From: Oculina patagonica
Lineage: Eukaryota
Assembly (NCBI RefSeq): GCF_052425735.1
Contig: NC_135761.1
Location: 8,184,001-8,248,000 of the forward strand
DNA length: 64,000 bases
Direction of reading: 5' to 3'
The position numbers were made by a program, and so were the translations under genes. Shown here piece by piece: positions 17,601 to 50,600 of this stretch (position 1 is its first letter; each line of letters begins with the position of its first letter). The notes under the pieces are model-generated. The model worked only from the letters and a program-made list of their open reading frames with translations, had not been told where the DNA came from and made no database searches.

Positions 17601-20600
17601 AATATCATAACAAGAACGAAAGCATGGTGATGGTGATTTTTGTTTTCTATTTGTTGATTATTCTGTTCTTATTAAAATCTTATCTCTGTGTGTGTTTTTT
17701 TTCTAATGATTCATTGTACTGTATACATTGAAAAGCGTTTTGCAGTCTTAGTAAGCCAATGAAATTAAAAATTAAAAATGTTCTTTCAGTCGACTGCTCT
17801 ACCCAAAAGCACAGCTTTGTTTGGCCACGGTGTATTTTAATAAACTCTTGTGTAAATCACAAATAAAACGATAAATGTATTTAACATGCGCTGCTACGAA
17901 ATGGAATTAGATTTAGCTTTTCTGGAACGAAGGAGGATCTCGTACGCTGTGTATGCATGGATGTGTTAACGTTGCTCATATCTGGAATATCAATTCCACT
18001 TCTCGTTTTCACTATTTTTGGGAACTTTCTTGTCATTGTGGTTATCAACAAAAACAAGAAACTGCAAAATGTGAACACAAGCCTAATATCCAGCCTCGCT
18101 TGGTCGGATTTCGGGTTCGCCGTTGTCACTTTCGTCGAAATATTTCTTGTGTCGAACAATGTCGCGAACTTTTCTTTTCAATTCGTCATGAACGCTTTAA
18201 GCTCAATTTACTTTCTTGTTGCTCTGGCAGTAGAAAGGTATTTTGGTATTTTGAAACCTTTTCTACACATGAAAAAAGTGGGAAAATCTTTGACGCAGAA
18301 AGTCATTTTTGCAGTATGGATGTTCGCTGGAGTTTTCAGCGCGGCGGGAATTGTTATTGACTCTCTAAGCTCGCAGAGTACTTGGGAAACGAAAAACGCT
18401 ACTGCGAATAAAACAAGCAGTTTACCTCACGAGAACGTAACAAACGGTGCACTACTTTGGTTTAAAACTCTTAGCACGGTAAGCACAGTTTACATATTTG
18501 TGCTCGTCACATTTGGTCTTGTTATACCGAGTGTTGTGATGATTTTCTGTTATTCGCGAGTTATTTATCACGTGTGGTTCAACACAGATAACAACAAATC
18601 GACAAATCTTGCTATTTTCAAGTCCCGACGCAAGCTGACAAAGCTCTTTATTATCCTTACGATAACATTTTTATTTACTTGGACTCCTACATTCGGAAGA
18701 CCCATTGTAACACGATTTGGAAATGAGGAAAACGCTCGGAGATACCAGTTATTTTCCATGTTCTTTGCTCTGGTCGGTTCAGCAGCTAATCCTGTGATTT
18801 TCTCATTTCGCTGTCCAAGATTTCGACAGGGACTTTTCAAACTGCTAAATTGTCGTTGTTGTAAAAGAAAGACACGACTAAACGCCAACAGAATTTTTGT
18901 GGCAAACAGCTATACACTGAAGGAAACGAAAAGACCGCCAGCTATTGTTCAACCTGTGTCAATTTCAGTTGGCGCCGCTGGACAACCAATGACTCCGTTA
19001 TGATCCACACTCGTTCCCAGACCCTACTTATTCGTTCTCAAAGGTGATAAAAGACTGAGGAGAAATTCCCTTGATGCAATGTGTTCTAGTCAAAACCGCC
19101 TCGGAAACGACTGGAAACGAGTCTGGTAATGACCTGTTTACAAGGGATGAAGATAACTTTAATACTAGGAATACCCTTGAAAGAGGGTCAAAGATGCCGT
19201 AAGATCAAATCAAAGGCCTTTGGGTTGTCTCGTGTCACGCATATTTCGGCAGTTATTACCTCTTTATACAAAAGATACAGGGATGACCTTTGGATTTCCC
19301 TTTAAAGAGTCTCTTTCACTGCAATTTTCTTTTAATTAATGAGACGTTAATATATATTGATTTTTTTGTTATTATTTCATACCAAGTTGTATATAAAGCA
19401 GTACAATCACCATTAAATGGTTAATAACATTGTAAGATAAAATTCACACACGGAAAATCAAAGTTATAAGCCCCTACCGGCTGCTAACGAAAACGATTTT
19501 CCGGGTATATAAGTCCTCCCCGAACCATGTTTTCGAAAAAAAAAATTACGTTCTAATTCGCTACGCTCAAACGAACGTAAATTATTTTCTTCTTCAATAC
19601 TGCAAAAAATACACACCAAGGGAATGATGGTTGGATGCTCAGGCAATCCAAGCTGACATTTATTGATACATTTCATACAGTGAAAAAGGAACGTTTAGAG
19701 CTATGTTGACGCCTACCAGAAAAAATAGAAGTACCAAAATACTTATTAAATCAGTTAGGATAAGGTGAGAAGTTATTTCAAAATAATTATATGTACAATG
19801 TAATAAAAGTAATCGTTGTGATAAATTGGCGCTACTTCTAACCACGGATGTAGCTTCTTCGGGCTTATGCTATCAATGACAATAAAATACTCAGAGCAAG
19901 ATCCTTTACAGTTCTTCAATAGCTCCCTACATCTTGCGCATAACAGCTTGGTACCATTCTGCTAGACGGTATTGAAAAACCACAAAAAACTTAGAAACTT
20001 ATTGATCAATAATGTTAAGCTGTTGTTGAGACGAGATAATATAGTTACATAACCTCTTAATTTAAACATTAGTCCCTTCACTGTAAACATCAGTAGATTT
20101 CCACATGTACGTAAGGAACAAATAACTAGAATGAACAGCCAAAATGCCAAAAGCTAAGCTTAAGGTAACAGACTATTCAATACATCATTTCGAAGAATCT
20201 TTCGCTACCTAACAAACATATGCAAGCTAAGCGCAAGTCCTTCAGGCTTGTTGATGGAGCAGCATACTTATCGATGATTTTATTAGCAGAGATAAACACC
20301 CTAACAAACGCTGAACCGCTATTAAAAAACTATTTCAAATTGAGCTATCCGGCCAAATGATAAATGATAATGCGGACATGAATCAAAAATAAAGCAGCAT
20401 AAGACTTGAAACTACGTAAGATGCGCATGCGGATTGTAAAGCGATACAACTGAAACTGATCATGAGACAGTATGAGGACAAGATACCGCATCTTATAAAG
20501 AACTTGACGATTTTTTTTTTTTTTTTTTTTGGAATATTTTTTTTTTGCTGTGAAATCCATCTTAACCTTCATAAACAACTTCAGGACGTCCTTCGTGCTT

Positions 20601-23600
20601 GGTTTCTTGCTAGCTGGGGGCTCCTCTGATAACCTTGAATAGTTAACATCTATAATGAAGAAAAAAGAGAAGTGACAGGCATTTGTATCCATATAAACCT
20701 ACATGGAAGCGAGCGAGCACATAAACTGAAATAAATTAACATAAGCTGAATGCAGACAAATTGCTCTGCAAAATCAGGCCAGCGCCTCCTTTCTGAAAGG
20801 TGAATGGACAAGTGACCCAAAATGAGGCCAGCGCCTCCTTGCTGATGAGTGAATAGACAAGCGTCCCAAAAACAGGCCAGCGCCTCCTTCTGATGAGTGA
20901 ATGGACAAGCGTCCCAAAGTCAGGCCAGCGCCTCCTTTCTGATAACGTCGATCAATCTTAACCAAACATAAATAGAAACTGGCCCAGCGGTCTTGTAATC
21001 AGCGAAAAACTTTATACAAACAGCTACCAATGTTGAAATGAAAGAATCTGCTCGAAGTAAAACAGTATTTCGCCGATGTTCCAGTACACTCTTGCTATAA
21101 AGACTATAAACAGCTTGCCATCTATTGCAAAACGAGCAATTATTCTGAAAGTTTAGGAAAAAACGAGACGAGGTCCAGAACAGTACGATAAATGTGGTAA
21201 TGGCCTTGCATGTACACGAGAAGTGAATACCTAGTGAATTAATAAATCCACTCCGTAAGTCCTGCATGGATTTCAAAAACTAAAGTGAAAACATACCTAG
21301 TTGTTGCCAAACTGACAAAGTAGACCACTATATGGGATTCCCACCCATTTTCAATGCTTCAAAACATGATGAGTTGTAATTAGTCAACCATTTATGTATA
21401 AATAATGCGACTTTATAATCCTCACATCGAGCTCCGTACGGGAAACCATAGCATACAATTTGACACCGCTGTCAATAGGAGCTGAAAATTTTGGGCTATA
21501 TAACATGTAAACTTCAACTTCGTGCTACTCGAATGTAATACTCTGCAAACGAACAACTATCTAAAACCAACTTAACATAGAGCCTTGCTGAAATGACAAA
21601 AACTTTTCCAGACACGTCATACCACAAACGTGTATACATGCACCCAGTTATCATTATGGCGCACTTGTCCACTGTTACCTAAATGGACGCCACATTTTGT
21701 GGCACTAGCATCTGAGCTAACAATACAATAAGACGGGCCAATCCATAATGACTTTTCAAAATCATCCTGTCCAGTCCTCTTCAATACTCAACATGTTTTC
21801 TTAGAGAATAAATTGGGCCAAAGTAAACGTCTAGTGAAATCGTAATCCTGCGCAGCCTCAATGTCCTTGTTGTAATAACTAGTCATAATTCGGGAAATGT
21901 CCTCAAATACTACACCAATGGAAACAAATTTCCCCCAAGCCAGGCTAAACAATTCCCCATAAAACTTTTTTCTGAAACAATTATGAAGACATACAGAAAT
22001 GCGAAGTAAAAATAACCGTCTATCCGAAATAGGAATTGTTCTATAGATAGTGTTCTATACTATACCATTCGAAAATTAACAAGGGTCCACTAAAACTTCC
22101 CGCCATAGCTAAAAAATAAATCTGAACTTCCGTAAACTGGATCTAAGACTGCACAAGAGTAATAATCAATATGGATCAAATTCCCCTCGTCCAGGAATAG
22201 AACAATGTTGACCCCCTTGAATCCTTCAATATTCAGTTCGAGCGACTTGAGGCATGGAATAAAGATCCAACCCAAATGGAAATACAGTAAACAGAAAAAC
22301 ACCTAAACTAAGCGTCACCTAACGAAAAGCAAGCGAAAACCTAACAATATAAATGTGCGATGATCAGGGTGTGAATAGCTATATAGGTGATAGGTAATAG
22401 CCACTTGGACCAAACAAAACCATAAATACTCCCTTTAGAATAGGGAAAAGTGATATTCCCATTTACGCACTAAATCCTTGTTCATAAAAATGTTTATCTC
22501 TTCTTCCATAGGGTTAATTCGAAACACTTAAGGGTAAACCATATAAGAAGGAGCCTTAACTTCTGCCAACCCGGTAAAATGTAAAGGCACTAAATAGCTT
22601 ATCTACAAATCATACAGAATGATGTAAAGATGACACATAGCTTTTGAAAAATTTCAGAGGGAATCTTCTTGAAAGGAAGACGAAAACCATCTAAAACAAC
22701 TGATACAATAATCTCTGAGACGCCTAAAAATAACAGAAATGAATATTTCTTCCCAGACTGCCCTTTTATAACTTGCAACACACCTGGTCTAGTAGAAACT
22801 TCACGCTCATATCTGATTTTTGTGTTACCTCATTCAATTCGTCAAACAGATCGACATTACCAATATCATTTCGATGCCCCATCAATGCGTGCTCCTGATG
22901 CCGGCGGGCTTAGTGGAAGCGGCGCTGCTCCAGTAATGGGAAGTTCAACTACTTTAGTTTTAATGCAGTCTGCAAAAAGTTTCCGAACCTGCAGTCCTTA
23001 ACCCACTGTCCGCCGTTTGAAATAAAAAAAATGACACCTGCAACACATTCTGTTCGGACAAAAAACATGTATAAAATTGACAAGCAATCAATTAGACAAG
23101 ATAACAAAAACGAAATGGGCGGGCGGGCGGGCGGGTTTACAACTTCAATGTCAGCATGGAATGCGAAAGCGAGAGGACTGAACAACTCTGAACAGTCTAT
23201 AAATACCTTATCAAACCAATCAGAGATACCCAAGGGACACGCCCAAGCGGCGTGTCATACACAGCGAAATAAATAACCAAAAACCTGTTAATGAACTGTA
23301 TTGACTGCATACCAGTAGAAAATACATTTACGTTCTAATTCGCTACGCTCAAACGAACGTAAATTATTTTCTTCTTCAATACTGCAAAAAATACACACCA
23401 AGGGAATGATGGTTGGATGCTCAGGCAATCCAACCTACGCGAGACATCACAAAGTAAAAAATATAAGATCCTACCGCGAGAAGGCTAAATTGCTAGTTGG
23501 TTAGAACCTCTTGAGAATACTGCGAAATTAGCGTCCGAATCCGCCTTCTTCTTTTCGGCTGACAGTCAATTCTCTTTGCATCTTCTGACAAGCAAGCTCG

Positions 23601-26600
23601 TCCGACTCGTATACCTGTAGAGCCAACCACTCGTCTTTGCTTCTATCCGCGAGATTTATCGCCTTCTGCCGCGTCGTTGTGAGCTGCCCTCCTTGCGTTA
23701 CCAGCTTGCAGACTTCTGACGGTTTATCCAGGCTGATTTCTAGCTGAACGAACGTTCAACTCAAACAGCTTATAATTACTATGAATTTAAACTACAATGC
23801 TTCAATGTCGATTTTCGACTTTCCTCCGAATTCTAATTTGACTAACCGAACTAGGACGACAGGTAATTCTTGAACAGGGAGGACACTTCATTGACTAACT
23901 CTGGATTTGAAGACTCTTGCTGCAACCATAGGATTACTCAAAACTTCGGGTTTACAACTTCAATGTCAGCATGGAATGCGAAAGCGAGAGGACTGAACAA
24001 CTCTGAACAGTCTATAAATACCTTATCAAACCAATCAGAGATACCCAAGGGACACGCCCAAGCGGCGTGTCATACACAGCGAAATAAATAACCAAAAACC
24101 TGTTAATGAACTGTATTGACTGCATACCAGTAGAAAATACATATACTAACGTCCTAGCTCACCAAGCATTGTGCTTCAGTAGAAATAAATTTATATTCTC
24201 TGGAATTATCATCGTCTTTTATTTAAAATTAATAACGTCTAGTCGTTAAATACAGGGCTAAGCTGACACAAAGGGATCAATGTTTTTAGAGTCGTGTATC
24301 TTCGCTTCCACTGACTAAATTGGTCTTCATAATGCAGCACAAAGCACGGTACATTTGCTTAACCCTCGATGTAAACACAAAGGCTAGCGCTATATACAGA
24401 CCCTGAAGAGTAGTAAATATGATAAACGGGTATTCAAAATACTGAGACACAAGAATCTTCAAAAACCCAAATATCCAAGTGAAGCCCATTAAGATGAAGA
24501 TCTTTAGAAACACACCGGCAGTTTTGCGTTTTACCTGTTCATGTGTTGCTCTTCGCGTCTGATTGTTAGTTTTCCTGATAGCTCGCACAGTCAAAGCAAA
24601 ACATACTGCGTTAAAAAAGATGGAAAACGCGAGCGGTACAAGCAAGAAAAACAAATTTGCAGTTGAGTTGTTTATCCAACATCCCTTGATACCGCCATAG
24701 TGAAATTCAACCACGTTGGTCTGGTCAAGAGCAACGCACACGACAACAAAAACAAAAGCAGGAAGCCAGCCTATTGGAATCCTTCGCAATAAATCAAAAC
24801 GCTTTTCCCTTTGGTTTGGCTGTCTGTTACGGATGCGAATTTTGGAAAACGCCTTCCATGTTTCAAAAGCTATGAATGACATCCACATGAAAGAAACTAG
24901 GAAGAAATATTGCAATAAAATAGCGATAATTGTACATGCAATTTTGGCATTAACGTACCCGGTTGCAAGATAGAACAAGTCAGCCAGCAAGTGTGCCAAA
25001 CAAAGATTCATGAGATAACTTCCAGGTAAAGTGCGAAGTTCCTTAAATAACGAATAGGTCACTAAGACTAAAACAAAACTTAAAATGGACAGGGAAAGTC
25101 CAACATAGGTCAACACGACTAAGACAATGTCATTCTCTGTTGTACTGCTGCGATCAGCTTTTGTAAGTGATTCTTCGTAATTTGAAGAAAACTGTGTACA
25201 AACCCAGATGGTGTTATTGAGTAACAGAAAACTTCCTGGTTGAAAGAGCTCTTCTGAAATGTTACGATACAATGAACCATTTGGTAAAATGACATATTCG
25301 TCTTCCGTTAATCCAACTAAAATTCCAGAACAGTTTAGCTGTGGTTGTTTACAGACTGTAAGGATGCCGATAGGCGCTAGCGATCCGTTTATCCATTCCG
25401 TTTCGTTTGAGTAATAGTCCGTCTCTTGAAATATTTCTCCTGTATTCTTGATTTTGACCGCGTTTCTTTCAAACGTATATTCACTTGGGTAGAAAGTTTC
25501 AACTACAGCACAATAAAATGGTTTCACAGCGACTTTGAAGACAGTAAAATTTGCGTTGTTCAAAATGACAAATTGAGATGTCATTGCTGTTTGGAAAGTT
25601 TGAGAAGAGATGTTCTTCTGTATCGTTGGGTTAATATGGATGTTAAACACTACAGTCGAGACTGGACCGAAAGGATTTCCAATAGAGATGTTAGAAATAA
25701 ATGTCTTGTTTAAGTTTAACTTATTCGCTATGGCTTCTTGGAAGTTGACTATAGTTATCAGAGGCCGGCCCCAAGAGGAAGTCTCGGAACGCATCCAAAC
25801 ACTGATAGTGAAGATTTTTTCATGGATAGAGATGACATCAGATGGTGAAATGCCAGGTCGACAAACTTCAAGATGAAAATCATAAACTTCGTCTCCTTGT
25901 AGACAAGAAACGTTAAATCGACGTACCTTTGACCTTTGAACTTCACGATCCATTCCGAGTTGGTCCCGATCTGAAAAGTCAAGATCCATTACAAGAGAGA
26001 AGGGCTTCACAAGTGTAGGATCATGTCTGGAAGGATAAGGTCCTGGGCCACAGCTGAAGTTTTTCACTTTGCTACAAAGAGCGCAGTATGGATTGGAAAA
26101 TGTTCTCCGGTAAAAACCATTCTTTTCGTATACAAGTCTCAATGGTCCGTTGAAACATTTTTGTTGCACTTTTTGTGGGAAGGAAATGTCATAACAATAG
26201 CTAGGTGAGATGAGGTGACAGTATCTGCGCCTTGCTCCTATCGGAGGCCGCCAGAAAGGGTTGTCACAGAAAGTAGACAAGAATTTGAAGATTTCTTTTT
26301 TCTTGTACTGATTTGGAACTGGGACATCGCAGCTGAATTTAAAATTGTAAAATGTCAGGTCATTTGAATTCAAACCGTGGCACTGTGCACAGTAATGATT
26401 TTTGTAAGTATTTCCTTTTCCGTCAATAACAGGCACATTGTCTTTGAGATTATCGTATGAAAGAAAAAGATCTGGATTGCAGAGATCTTTAATATCATCT
26501 TGAGTCCAATTCTTAGGACACGAAGAAATCATCCACACGCCATGAACTGTGCTAAAGGAGTTATAACTAGATACACACTTCCACCGGCCAATGTCATCCG

Positions 26601-29600
26601 GGCTCTTTGCGTTATGTGCTGACATCCCGGATGAGGGACAAAATTGGTCAAAGTCCGCACAGCAGTCTTTGAAGAACTCGCAACTGCTGTCACAGAAGCA
26701 TTGAAGCCTTTCCTCTGTTCCACCGAGTTCTCTTTCTTGCGTACATCGTCCCCTGCAGGAAAACCAGTAACTTTCACAATGCATTGTGATGTTGATATCT
26801 TCATTAGACCACAGATTTGGCACCACTTGCGTTGGCGTTGGTGTCACATTAAGGAATATGAACAGCAAGTTTGCAGTACTATTCACCACCGATGAGTTTG
26901 TCAAAATAGAACTGTTGTTACCTCGACTATCGTTCAGTAGTGCTGGGTTGATATTTCGACGCATCCTTTGGATGTTGCTCCCTGGAATTAACATTTACAC
27001 CCCCTTTCAGTGTTACATGCATAGCAGCTTTCTATCGACATCCATCTTTCGACGAGCTAAAAAAACCAGACGGATCGCAATCCGCCAATCACAGCCCACT
27101 AGCACAAACTTCTGAGCTTGTGGGCTCATTTGCAAGAAACCAACACCTGTATGCATCTGTTTTGATTGGCTCATTTCAAACAGCACGTCAAAAGACGATG
27201 TCGAAAGATGGATGTAGAGAGATAGCTATGCACGTAACACTGAGAGGGGGTGTTGTATATTCCGATGTTATTAGTACTGATGTTATTAGTACTTTGTGTT
27301 CGTTATCTTCACCACAGTTGTGTTAATTGATACTATGAGGCCAGATCCTATATCTTTTGTAATTTGTTTATAATGCAGCACCGCTTGTCAATACCATGCC
27401 ACGTATATCGTCGTTTGTTGTCTAGATTTCGCTTGTAAACTATAATTGTATTTTAAGTCATTTCTCTGATGCCTTTCAAAGTGTAGGAAAACTCAAAATA
27501 ATAGTTTCCTAACATAAAAAACAACAACAAAAAAGTAATAAAACGCGAAAACAACCAAGAATGGTTTTGACTGATAAAGATTAAGACGGATTTCGAACGA
27601 CAGACTTGAAAAACTTTGCATTTTTTTCAAGAAGTGTTGTCCGTGACGTTAACCGAAACGCGGTTTGCGAGCTGTGAACGCGTATTATTAGAGTAAACTT
27701 TCACAGAGGGTTTTAAAATTGCTGGCAGCAGATCGGAGAAATTATGCAAGAGACATAAATCAACATACTGCTGTTTACGAACAAGTCGCATTTTAGGAGG
27801 CCCTACATTTAATCAAAGGATATAAATGGTAGCCGGGAATAAAATAACCTTATCTTATTACACGAAATTTTCCTGACATAAAATTTTCGCGTTTTTCAAC
27901 TCGCGGAAATTAGAGGTGGCGAAGACAAGAAATTGGTATATTTGATGAAGGAATATTAAACAAATTTTCCAAATTCACGAAAATTAAGTGTCGCCAATTA
28001 TCCCTCTTCTAAGATCACGAAATCAAGGTAACTTTGGCTAAGTGAAATGATAAAAAAATGAAATTCGCGTTTATCACAATGAAATGGCGAAAAGGGAAGG
28101 TTAAGGCATATCAAGTCTACATACCAGCTGAAACGTGAAAATCCTTCTGCAAAACGTCGAATTGAGGTTTCTCCATCCTGTTTAGCTTGGCCATATTGTT
28201 TTCATCCGCGTTTTTCAAGTTTGGAAGATTGGCTGGACGTTCAATATGCAGCCCGAGCCGTTTTAAACAAGATTTTCCTACGCTGAAATAACTTGCTTGC
28301 TCAACATCTTTGTTTTGCTTTGGACTAGAAGAACAGAATATAAGAACTGTAAAACATTTGAATACCAGGCCGAAGAAGACAGATCTCTTTATAATCCACA
28401 TTTTCCAAAGCGAATGTGAATCTCCGCTCTCTTAGGCTGAAATAATCTGAAAGAGCCTTAATTATAAATATAAGGCTCCGCGTGGCTTCCGGAAAGAAGG
28501 ACGCGGGATAATGGATTAATTGATTGTTTTAATCTCCTACTATTAGCTAACTTCTAATTTGTATGCCATTAAGATGATGTCGTCATTCAAACTCAGCAAG
28601 GACGATAAAACCATCGTAATAAAAATAAGCTTTTTTTAATTATTATTCATTTATTATGCACATGGTATTGTAAATATACTTTCACACTTTAATTCCCCCG
28701 ATAGCGCCCCCTCCCATTTTTTTTGTACTTAAGAAATGTTTTAGTGCAAATGTCACAAGATAGGCCATTTTTTTAATGCTCAAAGGGAGTTATGCTCTGG
28801 TGTAAAAACTACAATTTCTAAGATACCAGGCTGCCTCCATTAGGAATCCACTGTCAGATTTTAATCTGTGAGAGCATATTTCCAATGGTTGCAGCAAAGT
28901 GGCTCAAGGGAGAGTCATTTGACAGTCCTACGTTAATTTTGAAACCGGCACGTGATTTGTTAAACGCCGGTTTTTATTTCCGGTAAAAAATCGACCTCTC
29001 CGGGTCCTACAGCGTATTTAAAGTTAGTGACAATATCGCCATGCCCTCCACCACTGAAGTAGATTTTGTCGACCTGACGTCATTTTGTGTGTGGTTTGAT
29101 GGGCCGCGCATAACAAGAAAAGCAAAAATCGCACTTTGGAGAAATTTTCTACCCTTCACTAGATCACTCGGAACCAAATGGACAACGAGAGGAAAGCGAA
29201 ATTACCGGAGATTACAGGGCTGGAAATTCTGTAGCGATTTGACCAATTTCACGGAAGATATTTCGCTTCGAGTGAGATGCTGTCGAAAAAAGTTTCCAGC
29301 CTTGGGAATATTTAATAAAGTACACGTGTTCAAAATTTCGCAAAGCAATAACTCGTCAAAATCACTTCAAATTGGCTCGAGGAGCTGCCAAACAAGAAAG
29401 AACACGACACAGCAACAGTGTCAATTTTATTCATAAAACGTTCGAATTTCTATATCGTAAAAGAAAACCGTTTCATTCCCATACAAATCCTTATAAATTG
29501 AGTCTTAGAGTACTCTGGCTCTTATCGTTAGCTTGGGCTGCCTGTGGATAAACAAAAGAAAATTAATTGTGAAAATTTTGTGTTGATCAACTAATTTCCT

Positions 29601-41600: not shown

Positions 41601-44600
41601 GCGGGGACATGTTCCAGGGACATGTCGCAGCGACACGTCCCCTCGTGTGTGCTAATTATTTTTGGCACGCGCAACACGAAGTTTGAAGCTGTTTTGTCCC
41701 TGCGACATGTTGCACGGAATCCAACTTGTTAAACTTCGTGCAACATGTCGCAGGGACAAAATGTTGCAGGAATTCGTGTTGCATGTGCCAAAAATTATCC
41801 GCACACACGAGGGGACGTGTCGCTGCGACATGTCCCTGGGGCATGTCCCCGCTACAGTTACTTGTGTGTGTACACATTTTGATTTTGTTGCTGCTACATG
41901 TCCCCGCTACACGTCCCTGCTTCATGTCCCCGCAGTGTGAACAACACATGATTTTGTCGCTGCTACATGTTGCTGCGACATGTCCCTGCGTATTGTCCCC
42001 ACGTATGCGGAGACCTTTATGATGACTCGGCTGCTTGAATAAATATTACACGCACTTGGGAAACCACTTTATTCTTAATGATTTGCAAGAAAAATTATTA
42101 ATTTCTTTGGTCATCATAAACAGAAAAAAATAATTATGCAAAATTTTCTGTTGATGTTTTGTGTTGATATCGATATTGACTTTTGCAAGTTTTTAACGAA
42201 GATGTATTTATGAACTTGGAGTTGTTTGCTGACTAGACAAAAGAAAATTTCATAAATGCGCAGTTTGATGTTCTCGCAGCTTTAAGATGACTCAGCTGTC
42301 AGAATATTATTTTTTTACTTACTTGAGAAACCACATTATTCTTGTTGATTGGAAGCAAAATTACTAACTACTTTGGTCATCATAAACAGAAGAAAATTAA
42401 TTGTAAAAATTTTGTGTTGATCACCAAATTTTCTAATGATGTTTTGTGCTAATATCGATATTGACATTTGCAAGTTTTTTTTTACGAAGATGTATTATGA
42501 AAACACAGAGTTGTTTGCTGACTAGACAAAAGCAAACTTCATTAATACGTGTTCTTGCAATTTGATGTTCTCGCAGCTTTATGATGGCTCAGCTGCCTGT
42601 ATAAATATTACACGCACTTGGGAAACCACTTTATTCTTGTTGATTTGCAAGCAAAATAATTAATTACTTTGGTCATCATAAAGAGAAGAAAATTAATAGT
42701 GGAATTTTTGTTTTGATAAGATTAAAAAAAGGAATAAGCAACGGCCAACATACTGCTTAAAGATCAAGCTTTCTTTACCTACGCTATATACTTCAAGTTT
42801 CTGCCGGCAAACAGAGAAAAAAATAATAAGAACGAAAGCATGGTAATTTTTGTGTTCTGTTTGTTAAATATTCTTTTCTTATTTATATTATAATCCTAGC
42901 TGTGTGTTTTTTCTAATGATTCATTGTACTGTTTACATGAAAAGCGTTGTTCAGTCTTAAGGCTGGTTCTCATATGATCGCCCCGATCGTCTCTGTCGCT
43001 TCTGTCGTTTGCAAAGTCTGCGGTGATTGGAGCAAGCAAACTTTTTGAAGCGACAGAGGCGACAGGGACGATCGGGGCGATCATATGAGAATCAGCCTTT
43101 AGCGACCCAATGAAATAAAAAATAAAAAATGTTCTTTCAGTCGACTGCTCCACCCAAAAGCACAGCTTTGTTTGGCCAACGGTGTGTTTTAATAAACTCT
43201 TGTGTAAATCATAAATAAAACGTTAAATGTATTTAACATGCGCTGCTACGAAATGGAAGTAGATTTAGCTTTTCTTGAACGAAGGAGGATCTCGTACGCT
43301 GTGTATGCATGGATGTGTTAACGTTGCTCATATCTGGGATTTCAATTCAACTTCTCGTTTTCACTATTTTTGGGAACTTTCTTGTCATTGTGGTTATCAA
43401 CAAAAACAAGAAACTGCAAAATGTGAACACATGCCTAATATTTAGCCTCGCTTGGTCGGATTTCGGGTTCGCCATCGTCACTTTCTTCGAAATATTTCTT
43501 GTGTCGAACAACGTTTCGTATTCGTCTTTTCAGTTCGTCATGAACGCTTTGAGCTCAATTTACTTTCTTGTTGCTCTGGCAGTAGAAAGGTATTTTGGTA
43601 TTTTGAAACCTTTTCTACACATGAAAAGAGTGGGAAAATCTCTGACGTGGAAAGTCATTTTTGCAGTATGGTTGTTCGCTGGAGTTTTCAGCGCGGCGAG
43701 ATTTGTTATTGAGTCTCTAAGCTCGCAGAGTACATGGGAAAGGAAAAACGCTACGACGAATGAAACAAGCAGTTCACCGCACGAGAACGTAACAAATGAT
43801 GCACTATTTTGGTTTAAAACTCTCAGCACGGTTAGCACAGTTTACATATTTGTGCTATTCACATTTGGTCTTGTTATACCGAGTGTTGTGATGATTTTCT
43901 GTTATTCGCGAGTTATTTATCACATGTGGTTCAACACAGATAACAACAAAGCGACAAATCTTGCTCTTTTCAAGTCACGACGCAAACTGACAAAACTATT
44001 TATTATCCTTACGATAACATTTTTATTTACTTGGACTCCTACATTCGGAAGACCCGTTGTAACACGATTTGGGAATGAGGAAAACGCCCGGAAATACCAA
44101 TTATTTTCCATGTTCTTCGCGCTGGTCGGTTCAGCAGCCAACCCTGTGATTTACTCGTTTCGCTGTCCAAGATTTCGACAGGAACTTTTCAAACTGCTAA
44201 ATTGTCGTTGTTGTAAAAGAAAGAGACGACTAAACGCCAACAGAATTTTTGTGGCAAACAGCCATTCATTGAAGGAAACGAAAAGAACACCAGCTACTGT
44301 TCAACCTGTGTCAATTTCAGTTGGCGCTGCTGGACAACCATTGACGTTGTTATGACCCAGACTCGTTCCCAGTCCCTACTTATTCGTTCTCAAAGGTGAT
44401 GAAAGACTGGGGAAAAATTCCCTTGATGCAATGCGTTATAGTCAAAACCGCCTCGGGAACGACTGGAAACGAGTCTGGTAATGACCTGTTTACAAGGGAT
44501 GAAGATAACTCTAATACTAGGAATACCCTTGAAAGAGGGTCAAAGATGCCGTAAGATCAAATCAAAGGCCTTTGGGTTGTCTCGTGTCACGCATATTTCG

Positions 44601-47600
44601 GCAGTTATTACCTCTTTATACAAAAGATACAGGGATGACCTTTGGATTTCCCTTTAAAGAGTCTCTTTCACTGCAATTTTCTTCTAATTAATGAGACGTT
44701 AATATATATTGATTTTTATTGTTATTATTTAATACCAAGTTGTATATAAAGCAGTACAATCACCATTAAATGGTTAATAACATTGTAAGATAAAATTCAC
44801 ACACGGAAAATCAAAGTTATAAGCCCCTACCGGCTGCTAACAAAAACGATTTTCCGGGTATATAAGTCCTCCCAGGATATAAGTCCTCCCCGAACCAAGT
44901 TTTCGAAAAAAAATTACTAACGTCCTAGCTCACCAAGCATTGTGCTTCAGTAGAAATAAATTTATATTCTCTGGAATTATCATCGTCTTTTATTTAAAAT
45001 TAATAACGTCTAGTCGTTAAATACAGGGCTAAGCTGACACAAAGGGATCAATGTTTTTAGAGTCGTGTATCTTCGCTTCCACTGACTAAATTGGTCTTCA
45101 TTATGCAGCACAAAGCACGGTACATTTGCTTAACCCTCGATGTAAACACAAACGCTAGCGCTATATACAGCCCCTGAAGAGTAGTAAATATGATAAATGG
45201 GTATTCAAAATACTTGGACACAAGAATCTTCAAAAACCCAAATATCCAAGTGAAGCCCATTAAGATGAAGATCTTTAGAAACACGCCGGCAGTTTTGCGT
45301 TTCACCGTTTCATGTGTTGCTCTTCGCGTCTGATTGTTAGTTTTCCTGATAGCTCGCACAGTCAAAGCGAAAAATACTGCGTTGAAAGAGATGGAAAAAG
45401 CGAGCGGTACAATAAAGAAAAACAAATTTGCAGTTGAGTTGTTGATCCAACATCCCTTGATACCGCCATACTGAAAATCAACCACGTTGGTCTGGTCAAG
45501 AGAAACACACACGACAACGAAAACAAAAGCAGGAAGCCAGCCTATTGCAAACCTTCGCAATAAATCAAAACGCTTTTCCCTCTGGTTTGGCTGTCTGTTA
45601 CGGATGCGAATTTTGGAAAACGCCTTCCATGTTTCAAAAGCTATGAATGACATCCACATGAAAGAAACTAAGAAGAAATATTGCAATAGAATAGCGATAA
45701 TTGTACATGCAATTTTGGCATTAACGTACCCGGTTGCAAGATAGAATAAGTCAGCCAGTAAGTGTGCCAAACAAAGATTCATAAGATAAATTCCAGGTAA
45801 AGTGCGAAGTTCCTTAAATAATGAATAGGTCACTAAGACTAAAACAAAACTTAAAATGGACAGGGAAAGTCCAGCATAGGTTAATACGACTAAGACAATG
45901 TCATTCTCTGTTGTACTGCTGCGATCAGCTTCTGTAAACGATTCTTCGTAATTTGAAGAAAAATGTGTACAAACCCAGATGGTGTTATTGAGTAACAGAA
46001 AACTTCCTGGTTGAAAGAGCTCTTCTGAAATGTTACGATACAATAAACCATTTGGTAAAATGACGTATTCGTCTTCCGTTAATCCAACTAAAATCCCAGA
46101 ACAGTTTAGCTGTGGTTGTTTACAGACTGTAAGGATGCCGATAGGCGCTAGCGATCCGTTTATCCATTCCGTTTCGTTTGAGTAATAGTCCGCCTCTTGA
46201 AATATTTCTCCTGTATTTTTGATTTTGACCGCGTTTCTTTCAAACGTATATTCACTTGGGTAGAAAGTTTCAACTACAGCACAATAAAATGGTTTCACAG
46301 CGACTTTGAAGACAGTAAAATTTGCGTTGTTCAAAATGACAAATTGAGATGTCATTGCTGTTTGGAAAGTTTGAGAAGAGATGTTCTTCTGTATCGTTGG
46401 GTTAATATGGATGTTAAACACTGCAGTCGAGACTGGACCGAAAGGATTTCCAATAGAGATGTTAGAAATAAATGTCTTGTTTAAGTTTAACTTATTCGCT
46501 ATGGCTTCTTGGAAGTTGACTATAGTTATCAGAGGCCGGCCCCAAGAGGAAGTCTCGGAACGCATCCAAACACTGATAATGAGCAGGAGGGCATTTTGCG
46601 TGCGCATGCGTCGATATGGGCTAGTGCGCACGACAGAGAAGTTCTGCTATCGATTGTTTACATATTTTTCACAATTTATGGCCTAATTTTCAGCTCAAAA
46701 TAAAAGGTGTTTTAAGTTTTATTTGCTGTATACGATATTAAGAGTCCTTGCTTTATCTTCTGACAACAACAAGCATACTTTGGTGTCGGCGTGCCGTTTA
46801 TCTGATCGACTTTGGCTATGTGTATTAAACATTGCGCGTGGACAAAATGGCGACCGAATGTCGAGAACCTAAATACCTTGCCCATGTTTTTAATAGCTGG
46901 GAGGTCTAAACGGACAAAGCGCTATGGCAACTTAGTACTAAAATATAAAACAGCAGTTTTAACTATACGATGTTATAATCAAGTATCCCGGGTTTGAGCG
47001 AGTGGTCATGATTTTGTTCAGATTTTTCATAAAACTGCAATTTCATCGTTCTCACGATGCAAAAATCTCAAAATCTAACCTTGATCTCCAGCGTCTACCG
47101 ATGATATATGGAGCCTGAAGTACTTGAACTATCGTCTAATGCTGCGAAGGTAGCGTTAAAAAATGGTCTATTGTGGTATTTTTTAGCTTTCTTTAACGTA
47201 CGTTCTCGCTGGTTTATTCTAACAGAGAAACTATCGTTTGTGATTATTTCCTTAAACTTAAGCATTGGTCAAAATAACTTCACATTTCGATGTACCACAA
47301 TTATTCCGTTGAACAAGAAAAGAATTACTGAGATCGGTCTTAATTTTAAAGTGTTATGGTAATTCTTTGCTGGTAGACTATTTGTTTACATTTTACTATG
47401 TTAATTAGTACATTTTTGGCTCCTTTATCAAAATCTAGCCTTGATCACCAGTCAAAAAATAGCATGAAACGAACAAGCGATATATATATTTTTCAGAAAC
47501 GTTCTAATAACTGCTGCATAAAATGTCTTAAGAAATAATTTTTAACTATAAACAATGTTATTTTCAAATTTTCATTCAACGTATATTTCTTTAAGATTGA

Positions 47601-50600
47601 TGTTCATTTTGTTATAACGACTGTTCTACTTCTGTGTCGCCTAAATGTGTTTTAAAGAACTGCAGTTCTTGTTCCAGGAAACTCTGTTTGCCAGTCGAGG
47701 GCAAGTTGGCTTTGCTTCAGAGTCATCAGTGAGCTGCATTATCATGTGCAGAACACCCAAACATGTCTTTCCCCTCAGGGAAAACCCTTTTCTTTGGTGG
47801 CCGTCCCTTTAGGCAAAAAATCTCCCGACAAGCTATAATATTGCTCGCACTCTACCTGTATTACAGCAATTGATTTGATGTGAAGTTTTGATCCTAATAT
47901 ATCACACTCCAGCACACGCATAAATGTTTTCCTCTTTTTACGACCTGTTTGATTTTTGTCGGTGAAGGCTTTCCTATCTGTCCCACATATTTTCCCATTA
48001 TTTGCAACAACGATCCCGAAGCAGGCCAGAAAATCTGCTTTATAAGAGCCTTGCCACACACAAAACACTTTTTCTTAGCGAAATTGACGTCTATATTAAA
48101 TTATGTGACGATAAACAGTACAAAAAACAAAGTTTGAATCTTCCGCGCCATTTTTATTCCCAAGATGACGCGGTCTTTGTACAGCGGTTGCACGCATGCG
48201 CCCGCAAAATGCCCTCCTGCTCTGATAATGAAGATTTGTTCATGGACAGAGATGACATCAGATGGTGAAATGCCAGGTCGACAAACTTCAAGATGAAAAT
48301 CATAAACTTCGTCTCCTTGTAGACAAGAAACGTTAAATCCACGTACCTTTGACCTTTGACCTTCACGATCCATTCCGAGTTGGTCCCGATCTGAAAAGTC
48401 AAGATCCATTACAAGAGAGAAGGGCTTCACGGGTGTAGGGTCAGTTCTGGAAGGGTAAGGACCTGGGCCACAGCTGAAGTTTTTCACTTTGCTACAAAGA
48501 GCGCAGTATGGATTGGAAAATGTTCTCCGGTAAAAACCATTCTTTTCGTATACAAGTCTCAATGGTCCGTTGAAACATTTTTGTTGCACTTTTTGTGGGA
48601 AGGAAATGTCCAAACAATAGCTAGGTGAGATGAGATGACAGTATCTGCGCCTTGCTCCAATCGGAGGCCGCCAGAAAGGGTTGTCACAGAAAGTAGACAA
48701 GAATTTAAAGATTTCTTTTTTCTTGTACTGATGTGGAACTGGGACATCGCAGCTGAATTTAAAATTGTAAAATGTCAGGTCATTTGAATTTAAACCGTGG
48801 CACTGTGCACAGTAATGATTTTTGTAAGTATTTCCTTTTCCGTCAATAACAGGCACATTGTCTTTGAGATTATCGTATGAAAGAAAAAGATCTGGATTGC
48901 AGAGATCTTTAATATCATCTTGAGTCCAATTCTTAGGACACGAAGAAATCATCCACACGCCATGAACTGTGCTAAAGGAGTTATAACTAGATACACACTT
49001 CCACCGGCCAATGTCATCCAGGCTCTTTGCGTTATGTGCTGACATCCCGGATGAGGGACAAAATTGGTCAAAGTCCGCACAGCAGTCTTTGAAGAACTCG
49101 CAACTGCTGTCACAGAAGCATTGAAGCCTTTCCTCTGTTCCACCGAGTTCTCTTTCTTGCGTACATCGTCCCCTGCAGGAAAACCAGTAACTTTCACAAT
49201 GCATTGTGATGTTGATATCTTCATTAGACCACAGATTTGGCACCACTTGCGTTGGCGTTGGTGTCACATTAAGGAATATGAACAGCAAGTTTGCAGTACT
49301 ATTCACCACCGATGAGTTTTTCAAAATAGAACTGCTGTTACCTCGACTATCGTTAAGTGGTGCTGGGTTGATATTTCGACGCATCCTTTTGATGTTGTTT
49401 CCTGAAATAAACATTTACACCAGCTCTCAGTGTTACGTGCATAGCGGATTTCCATCAACTTCCATCTTTCGACGAGCTAAACAAATAAGACGGATCGAAA
49501 TCCGCCAATCACAGCCCACTAGCACGACCTTCTGAGCTTGTGGGCTCATTTGCAAGAAACCAACACCTGTATGCATCTGTTTTGATTGGCTCATTTCAAA
49601 CAGCACGTCGAAAGACAATGTCGAAAGATGGATGAAGAGAGATAGCTATGCACGTAACACTGAGAGGGGGTGTTGTACATTCTGATGTTATTAGTACTGA
49701 TGTTATTAGTACTTTGTGTTCGTTATCTTCACCATGGTTGTGTTGATTGATACTATGAGGCCAGATCCTATATCTTTTGTAATTTGTTTATAATGCAGCG
49801 CCGCTTGTCAATACCATGCCGTGTATATCGTCGTTTGTTTACTAGATTTCGCTTGTAAACTATAGCTGTATTTTAAGTCATTTCTCTGGTTCCTTCCAAA
49901 TTGTAGGAAACCTCAAAATAATAGTTTCCTAACATAAGAAAACAACAACAAAGAAGTAATAAAACGCGAAAACAACCAAGAATGGTTTTGACTGATAAAG
50001 GTTAAGACGGATTTTGAACGACAGACTTGAAAAACTTTGCATTTTTTTCAAGAAGTGTTGTCCGTGACTTTAACCGAAACGCGGTTTGCGAGCTGTGAAC
50101 GTGTATTATTAGAGTAAACTTTCACAGAGGGTTTTAAAATTGCTGGCAGCAGATCGGAGAAATTATGCAAGAGACATAAATTAACATACTGCTGTTTACG
50201 AACAAGTCGCATTTTAGGAGGCCCTACATTTAATCAAAAGATATAAATGGTAGCCGGGAATAAAAAAACCTTATCTTATTACACGAAATTTTCCCGACAT
50301 AAAATTTTCGCGTTTTTCAACTCGCGGAAATTAGAGGTGGCGAAGACAAGAAATTGGTATATTTGATGAAGGAATATTAAACAAATTTTCCAAATTCACG
50401 AAAATTAAGTGTCGCCAATTATCCCTCTTCTAAGATCACGAAATCAAGGTAACTTTGGCTAAGTGAAATGATAAAAAAATGGAATTCGCGTTTATCACAA
50501 TGAAATGGCGAAAAGGGAAGATTAAGGTATATCAAGTCTGCATACCTGCTGAAACGTGAAAATCCTTCTGCAAAACGTTGAATTGGGGTTTCTTCATCCT

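Follow-up and report, generated by a model that had tools for sequence, protein, structure and literature searches.

In the replication model for DIRS and split-direct-repeat retrotransposons (summarised in PMC7192593), the RNA lacks both extremities of the element, and an internal junction serves as the template from which the ends are restored. Ngaro, VIPER and the echinoderm form of Pat1 are usually drawn as A1-ORFs-B1A2B2, where ORFs are open reading frames (PMC6681497, PMC4157794), the nematode form of Pat1 and Kangaroo carry the internal repeats between the methyltransferase and the recombinase (PMC4157794), and such 'translocation of the internal repeats' has been treated as a change of character that recurs (PMC4157794). 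The element described here occupies positions 19546-24142, on the minus strand, of a window of 64,000 nucleotides from the stony coral Oculina patagonica (the whole stretch of DNA analysed; NCBI RefSeq assembly GCF_052425735.1, contig NC_135761.1, positions 8,184,001 to 8,248,000), and is one young, protein-less and helper-dependent copy of the DIRS/PAT tyrosine-recombinase kind. With its two repeats named P and Q, its layout is A1(P1)-gag remnant-B1(Q1).A2(P2)-pol remnant-(possible recombinase remnant)-B2(Q2). This is the ordinary split-direct-repeat topology, the only difference being where the internal junction falls, which is between pol and the N-terminal part of gag. The literature searched on PAT and DIRS elements yielded no description of a junction at this place, which is a new position of a known variable feature and is shared by a sister family in the same genome. 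The element probably belongs, with a likelihood of roughly three in four, to a non-autonomous PAT-like (DIRS-order) tyrosine-recombinase family of this stony coral that replicates by the split-direct-repeat model.

Layout and coding remnants of the element

The exact ends of the element, set from other copies and from an empty paralogous site, delimit 4597 bp between a 5' end at 24142 (ATGTATTTTC...) and a 3' end at 19546 (...GAACGTAA), and these termini are sharp and the same in all copies. A repeat search of window positions 18500-25500 resolved two families of direct repeats; inverted repeats of at least 30 nt were absent, which rules out a DIRS1-type design with inverted terminal repeats and an internal complementary region. 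Along the minus strand, P1 (the 5' terminal repeat, 'A1' of the literature; 23947-24142, 196 nt) is followed by a short arc of 513 bp, by Q1 (the internal copy of the 3' repeat, 'B1'; 23328-23433, 106 nt), by P2 (the internal copy of the 5' repeat, 'A2'; 23132-23327, 196 nt), by a long arc of 3480 bp and by Q2 (the 3' terminal repeat, 'B2'; 19546-19651, 106 nt). P1 and P2 show no differences over 196 nt, nor do Q1 and Q2 over 106 nt, and Q1 directly abuts P2, such that the internal junction is the element's 3' end fused to its 5' end (...GAACGTAA|ATGTATTTTC...). A first-pass annotation of the window had given this span, the same minus-strand order in other letters and the identity of both repeat pairs, all of which are borne out by the repeat search, the other copies and the empty site.

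Reference proteins for the coding remnants were taken from L051 (G000:C7:16761500-16771499, L051:1-10000), an intact PAT-like element of the same genome that was located through a 75-codon open piece of the short arc. Its gag, its pol with reverse transcriptase (RT) and methyltransferase (MT) and its recombinase are all open; the gag has a CCHC knuckle, the 783-aa pol matches RVT_1 and, weakly, Dam methyltransferase, and the tyrosine recombinase (YR) is 350 aa long, the order of the element being A1-gag-pol(RT/MT)-B1A2-recombinase-B2. These proteins were compared with the element by a frameshift-tolerant protein-to-DNA Smith-Waterman aligner written for the analysis, with scores set against those of shuffled queries. 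Only the minus strand shows coding remnants; scores for the plus strand, for the reversed sequence and for an unrelated control stretch are 49-71.

The gag remnant (23496-24002, minus strand), which contains 3 stops and 4 frameshifts, is 32% identical to L051 gag over residues 11-181, and its score of 108 stands against 52 +/- 7 for shuffles. Its motif RQK.I.LADRS..W....Y..D.LA lies in the short arc, where a tblastn search with L051 gag also reports a match (E = 6e-6), and the remnant begins within P1 just as L051 gag begins within its own A1. The 513-bp stretch between P1 and Q1, previously read as a spacer of about 510 bp, carries the gag remnant. The decayed pol (21189-22834, minus strand) is broken by 11 stops and about 29 frameshifts and is recognizable, at 33% identity, over L051 pol residues 105-675, in a colinear alignment that scores 216 against 69 +/- 9 for shuffles and so places the element with DIRS/PAT-type RT/RNase H sequences. 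It spans a pre-RT motif, RT and RNase H (SDAS), with PFGL and YLDD-like motifs along the way, and extends into the methyltransferase-like part. The pre-RT motif, GY.IPF at the start of the long arc, is matched by L051 pol in a plain tblastn search (E = 0.003). In the methyltransferase-like part the alignment continues over L051 residues 608-675, where the Dam match of L051 itself is sub-threshold, and the score belongs to the whole alignment. A possible relic of the CCHC zinc knuckle of gag (CCRC ... GQW.KDC; 22991-23046, minus strand) was seen by eye in the copy alignment just downstream of P2, and a statistical test of that region was null.

A recombinase remnant in the long arc is only weakly suggested, by a box-I-like piece (LKDLRLA.ICLLG...R) and an SKTDQ-like piece at 20120-20790 on the minus strand, which stand in register in L020, an older copy. 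The best frameshift-tolerant comparison reaches z = 4.0 among 16 tests, and a profile of 9 YR ORFs from this genome gives E of about 1 at the box-I-like piece, in the expected place. The in-frame open pieces of the element are 79 aa or less; Pfam returned no relevant match for ten of its open pieces, and plain tblastn with 42 YR-locus ORFs of the same genome returned no match to the element. Pfam and BLASTP likewise found nothing for the longest open frame of L020 (138 aa), because this is not the coding frame. The proposal that the ORFs are ruined consequently stands for RT and RNase H, with their stops and frameshifts, and is not established for the recombinase. Between the pol remnant and the possible recombinase remnant lie three tandem units of about 49 bp (...GGCCAGCGCCTCCTT...; 20791-20943, minus strand), the number of which differs between copies.

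The colinear pol and the exact end-to-end P/Q junction support the proposed membership in the DIRS order with split direct repeats (A1-B1A2-B2), a PAT-like feature. Ngaro elements, whose internal repeats lie downstream of the recombinase and which have no methyltransferase, are not matched. Ngaro membership is rejected on account of a junction upstream of pol and of a traceable, putative methyltransferase-like stretch after RNase H, which fits PAT-like elements instead of the Ngaro label proposed at first.

Copies and relatives in the coral genome

Near-identical full-length copies, for which the first-pass annotation had proposed a search, do exist. The 529-Mb genome holds 14 two-arc copies of the same layout on eight contigs; a DNA search gave twelve further full-length copies (95-97% blast identity) together with long-unit-only copies, short-unit-only copies and fragments, and a 30-nt junction probe has exactly 14 occurrences, each in a two-arc copy of the same order. 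Two of the 14 share flanks through segmental duplication, and one on a small contig may be an allelic copy. Twelve full copies, compared as natural sequences, are 97.3-99.9% identical in pairs with gaps excluded, and in 11 of the 12 the repeat pairs of a copy show 0-4 differences over 302 positions (24 in L013).

The defects of the window copy are for the most part those of the whole family. The gag and pol alignments run through 14 stops, of which 12 are present in at least 10 of the 12 copies, the gag stops being common to all copies (3/3 in 12/12) and 9 of the 11 pol stops to at least 10. Stops common to nearly all copies imply that the ancestor of the family was already non-coding and that its copies were made with enzymes supplied in trans. 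The family would thus appear, from its sequences, to have been amplified while dead, in agreement with the earlier view of a long-dead element mobilised recently in trans; the youth of the copies and their nearly identical repeat pairs speak for the second part of that view, as does an insertion date discussed below.

Trees of the long and short units show single-arc copies scattered through both subfamilies, which indicates repeated deletion products as opposed to separate lineages; loss of one arc through recombination between direct repeats, if repeated, would give precisely this scatter. Mini-derivatives of 220-410 bp, composed only of the start of P and the end of Q, occur at C2:32839524-32839741, C11:10906558-10906967 and C1:39137187-39137414, and may mark the minimal end signals or be mere internal deletions.

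An autonomous partner with the same repeats, which the first-pass annotation had proposed to seek, did not emerge. A search through the conserved junction found only the 14 family and 3 sister copies, and genome searches with three pol pieces and one gag piece found family members only, apart from distant L051-type gags matched by the gag piece. L051 itself is embedded in a 47-bp satellite and has, between pol and junction, arrayed repeats that contain GCCAGTGGGTGGCT; its 5' end (TAGTATTTTCC...) is similar to that of the window family.

The sister family was recognized at three further loci that carry the junction at 28 of 30 nt (...ATGTATTTTCCGCTGG), and its 5'-end 16-mer (ATGTATTTTCCGCTGG) has 22 occurrences in the genome and none in the control. 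Its two-arc loci (C1:43162700-43167609, C6:19088985-19093913 and C9:23641003-23653758) were located by end motifs, and unit sizes were deduced by pairing the places of 5'-end and 3'-end 16-mers. In these copies, which have the same layout, the short unit measures 907-916 bp and the long one 3994-4022 bp, and the sister family also includes short-only copies, long-only copies and one unit of 228 bp. It shares little with the window family beyond the junction, namely its end motifs and, at a single locus in the DNA search, a 66-nt match around the junction only. At C14:7375155 an unbroken pol frame of 743 codons stands about 100 nt downstream of a sister-type 5' end that has the same orientation, making this locus a candidate coding relative with the repeat directly before pol. 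A variant 3'-end motif, GTGAATTAGAACGTAA, occurs at ten sites, of which C13:3839490, 3880662 and 3915858 lie within 80 kb; one of the ten is inside a sister short-only unit, and the other nine suggest a further related family.

Insertion sites, terminal signals and replication

As had been noticed in the first pass, the element is missing from a paralogous duplicate in the same window, where the left flank can be followed as far as 44906 and the right flank from 44918 onward. The flanks of the element and the paralogous copy are 94.5-97.2% identical, and the empty target site (44889-44925, unstranded) reads on the coding strand as ...CGTTAGTAA|TTTTTTTT..., a sequence similar to the element's own junction. 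Comparison of the filled and empty sites reveals no target duplication, just a short shared core, and the flanks of 24 insertions are likewise without one. Of 24 independent sites, 12 have a 5' flank that terminates in AA, against an expectation of about 2, and 18 have one that terminates in A then A or T; this preference corresponds to the 3'-terminal AA of the element. It has been suggested that DIRS elements have, where their ends are joined, a short core matched in the target (PMC7192593), and the agreement between flanks and 3' end fits that idea. The window insertion is later than the duplication of its flanks, which is 3-5% diverged.

The segmental duplication involves window positions 17700-27200 and 43100-49620, again at 94.5-97.2% identity, and holds a 348-codon ORF for a rhodopsin-type receptor (17957-19003, plus strand) and a 902-codon adhesion-receptor-like ORF (24286-26994, minus strand), between which the retrotransposon is placed in one duplicate only. 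The paralogous copy alone has a 1.64-kb insertion at 46583-48221 with terminal inverted repeats of about 30 bp (AGCAGGAGGGCATTTTGCG...) and a target duplication of 8-9 bp, CTGATAAT(G), which interrupts the paralog of the 902-codon ORF and looks like a non-autonomous hAT-like DNA transposon. Elsewhere in the genome, the L007 and L016 copies of the retrotransposon sit in another repeat, with a palindrome-like motif, TTCACATGTGAAAATAA, on either side.

The repeats bear recognizable signals. In P, a reversed CCAAT box is accompanied by a TATA-like TATTTATAG (position 123), an initiator-like TCAGTC (position 147) and, in the gag frame, an ATG (position 171); Q contains AATAAT about 40 nt ahead of its end. 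P and Q are 94-100% identical to those of subfamilies whose arcs reach only 70-93%, and P1 is 96-99% conserved even against 88%-diverged subfamilies; such conservation above that of the arcs points to selection on cis signals. From these motifs, a transcript would start in P1 and end in Q2, without both extremities of the element. Near its end P may also have a donor, GTAAAC, and Q1.P2 is flanked by candidate GT...AG sites.

In the replication scheme favoured here, transcription would begin in P1 downstream of the TATA-like box and terminate in Q2 after AATAAT, and the resulting RNA would be copied by a reverse transcriptase supplied in trans. The internal Q1.P2 junction would provide the template by which the ends are restored and joined, and a recombinase, also supplied in trans, would paste the joined molecule into A-rich, junction-like sites with no target duplication. 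A junction between gag and pol would leave this scheme unchanged while placing a copy of the promoter-and-leader repeat before each arc. That a different replication intermediate is required, as the first-pass annotation had thought the architecture might imply, finds no support, as in the published model the junction is only the end-restoring template and its position is irrelevant.

Several points weigh against this scheme. The transcript ends are drawn from motifs only, the protein-piece searches did not find an autonomous partner, and the recombinase remnant is not statistically established. The left junction of the window copy is GTAT where a clean core exchange predicts GTAA, a single unexplained difference. 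Judged by sequence alone, movement as an excised DNA circle keeps a small probability beside the RNA route.

All 17 junction-bearing copies (14 of the family and 3 of the sister family, or about 15 independent insertions) have the short arc first. After end-joining, each two-arc element has two junctions identical over at least 302 nt, so a symmetric double-stranded circle opened at either junction at random would leave half of the insertions in the opposite arc order. This asymmetry may be common to all split-direct-repeat families and just easily visible here. A more specific proposal, tentative and with the odds against it, is that of a stony-coral PAT-like lineage in which the junction has shifted to the boundary of gag and pol, possibly within an intron splitting the gag zinc knuckle, and in which the pasting step distinguishes the new joined ends from the internal junction. 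If so, a promoter-and-leader repeat would stand before both gag and pol, and the integrating intermediate would not be a simple symmetric double-stranded circle.

The arc order also bears on an unlikely alternative, in which two independent units, one short (P-gag remnant-Q, 815 bp) and one long (P-pol remnant-Q, 3.8 kb), were joined by the recombinase at a shared junction, the two-arc form being a by-product and not the replicating unit. Short-only and long-only copies with the same sharp ends do occur at separate loci, in the family and in the sister family, and mini-derivatives of about 220-410 bp exist. Such co-integration would be expected to yield both orders, whereas 17 of 17 copies show one; moreover, the single-arc copies nest in both two-arc subfamilies with no clades of their own, single-arc units have no internal template for restoring ends, and the sister family has the same arrangement.

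Slightly less probable again is spread at the DNA level in the manner of Cryptons, with a recombinase excising circles at junction and end half-sites and re-inserting them without an RNA step. The lack of target duplication and the likeness of target to junction would suit it, and single-arc and mini forms would be expected from recombination between junction and ends. Excision and re-insertion alone bring no gain in copies, though, and there are at least 14 two-arc copies; P and Q conserve promoter-like and poly(A)-like motifs, and the internal junction is kept in all young full copies.

It is distinctly improbable that the element has a mirror-image architecture marking a YR-retroelement group that is undescribed and uses another replication intermediate, as the first-pass annotation had suggested. 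The long coding arc does follow the internal junction instead of preceding it, in a position not found described in the literature searched. Against this, the gag remnant runs from P1 into the short arc as L051 gag does from A1, which restores the order A1...B1A2...B2 and leaves the junction merely moved; the pol remnant, with its putative methyltransferase-like part, aligns with that of a PAT-like element; variation in junction position is known (PMC4157794); and the end-restoring step of the model is independent of where the junction lies. An assembly artefact, or a chance partial second insertion beside or nested in the first, has nothing in its favour beyond being possible in principle and is ruled out for practical purposes by the identical layout and junction of 14 copies with unique flanks on eight contigs.

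Comparison with known split-direct-repeat and DIRS elements

To an annotator, this is an ordinary dead transposon between two receptor genes. It extends the known range of internal-repeat positions in split-direct-repeat elements to the gag-pol boundary, and its family offers a clean natural data set for a poorly tested replication model, the ends being sharp and the copies young, with an empty site, derivatives of single-arc and mini type, and a sister family that has little beyond the junction in common with it. The strict arc order turns into a testable question how the recombinase picks between two identical junctions.

The closest likeness is to the PAT-like elements typified by nematode-form Pat1 and Kangaroo, with which the window element shares split direct repeats, a pol of RT, RNase H and a putative methyltransferase-like part, an upstream gag, the absence of target duplication and a junction that is internal as opposed to being at the 3' end (PMC4157794). 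L051 represents this same arrangement in the coral genome. The junction of these elements lies between methyltransferase and recombinase, whereas that of the window element lies between N-terminal gag and pol, and the window copy encodes nothing. Ngaro, VIPER and echinoderm-form Pat1 have in common with it the split direct repeats and the same presumed end-restoring mechanism, but their internal repeats are downstream of the recombinase (PMC4157794, PMC6681497), and Ngaro and VIPER lack the methyltransferase-like region that is traceable in the window element.

DIRS1-like elements are related through their pol and gag motifs, through recombinase-based insertion without target duplication and through the short core at junction and target (PMC7192593), although DIRS1 is built on inverted terminal repeats and an internal complementary region and the window element has no inverted repeats. 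Finally, the short-only and mini forms recall SIRE, the non-autonomous VIPER derivative of Trypanosoma cruzi, which is a short, protein-less unit of A and B repeats (PMC6681497). SIRE belongs to another superfamily and another host, and, unlike it, the dominant dead form in the coral retains both arcs and the internal junction.

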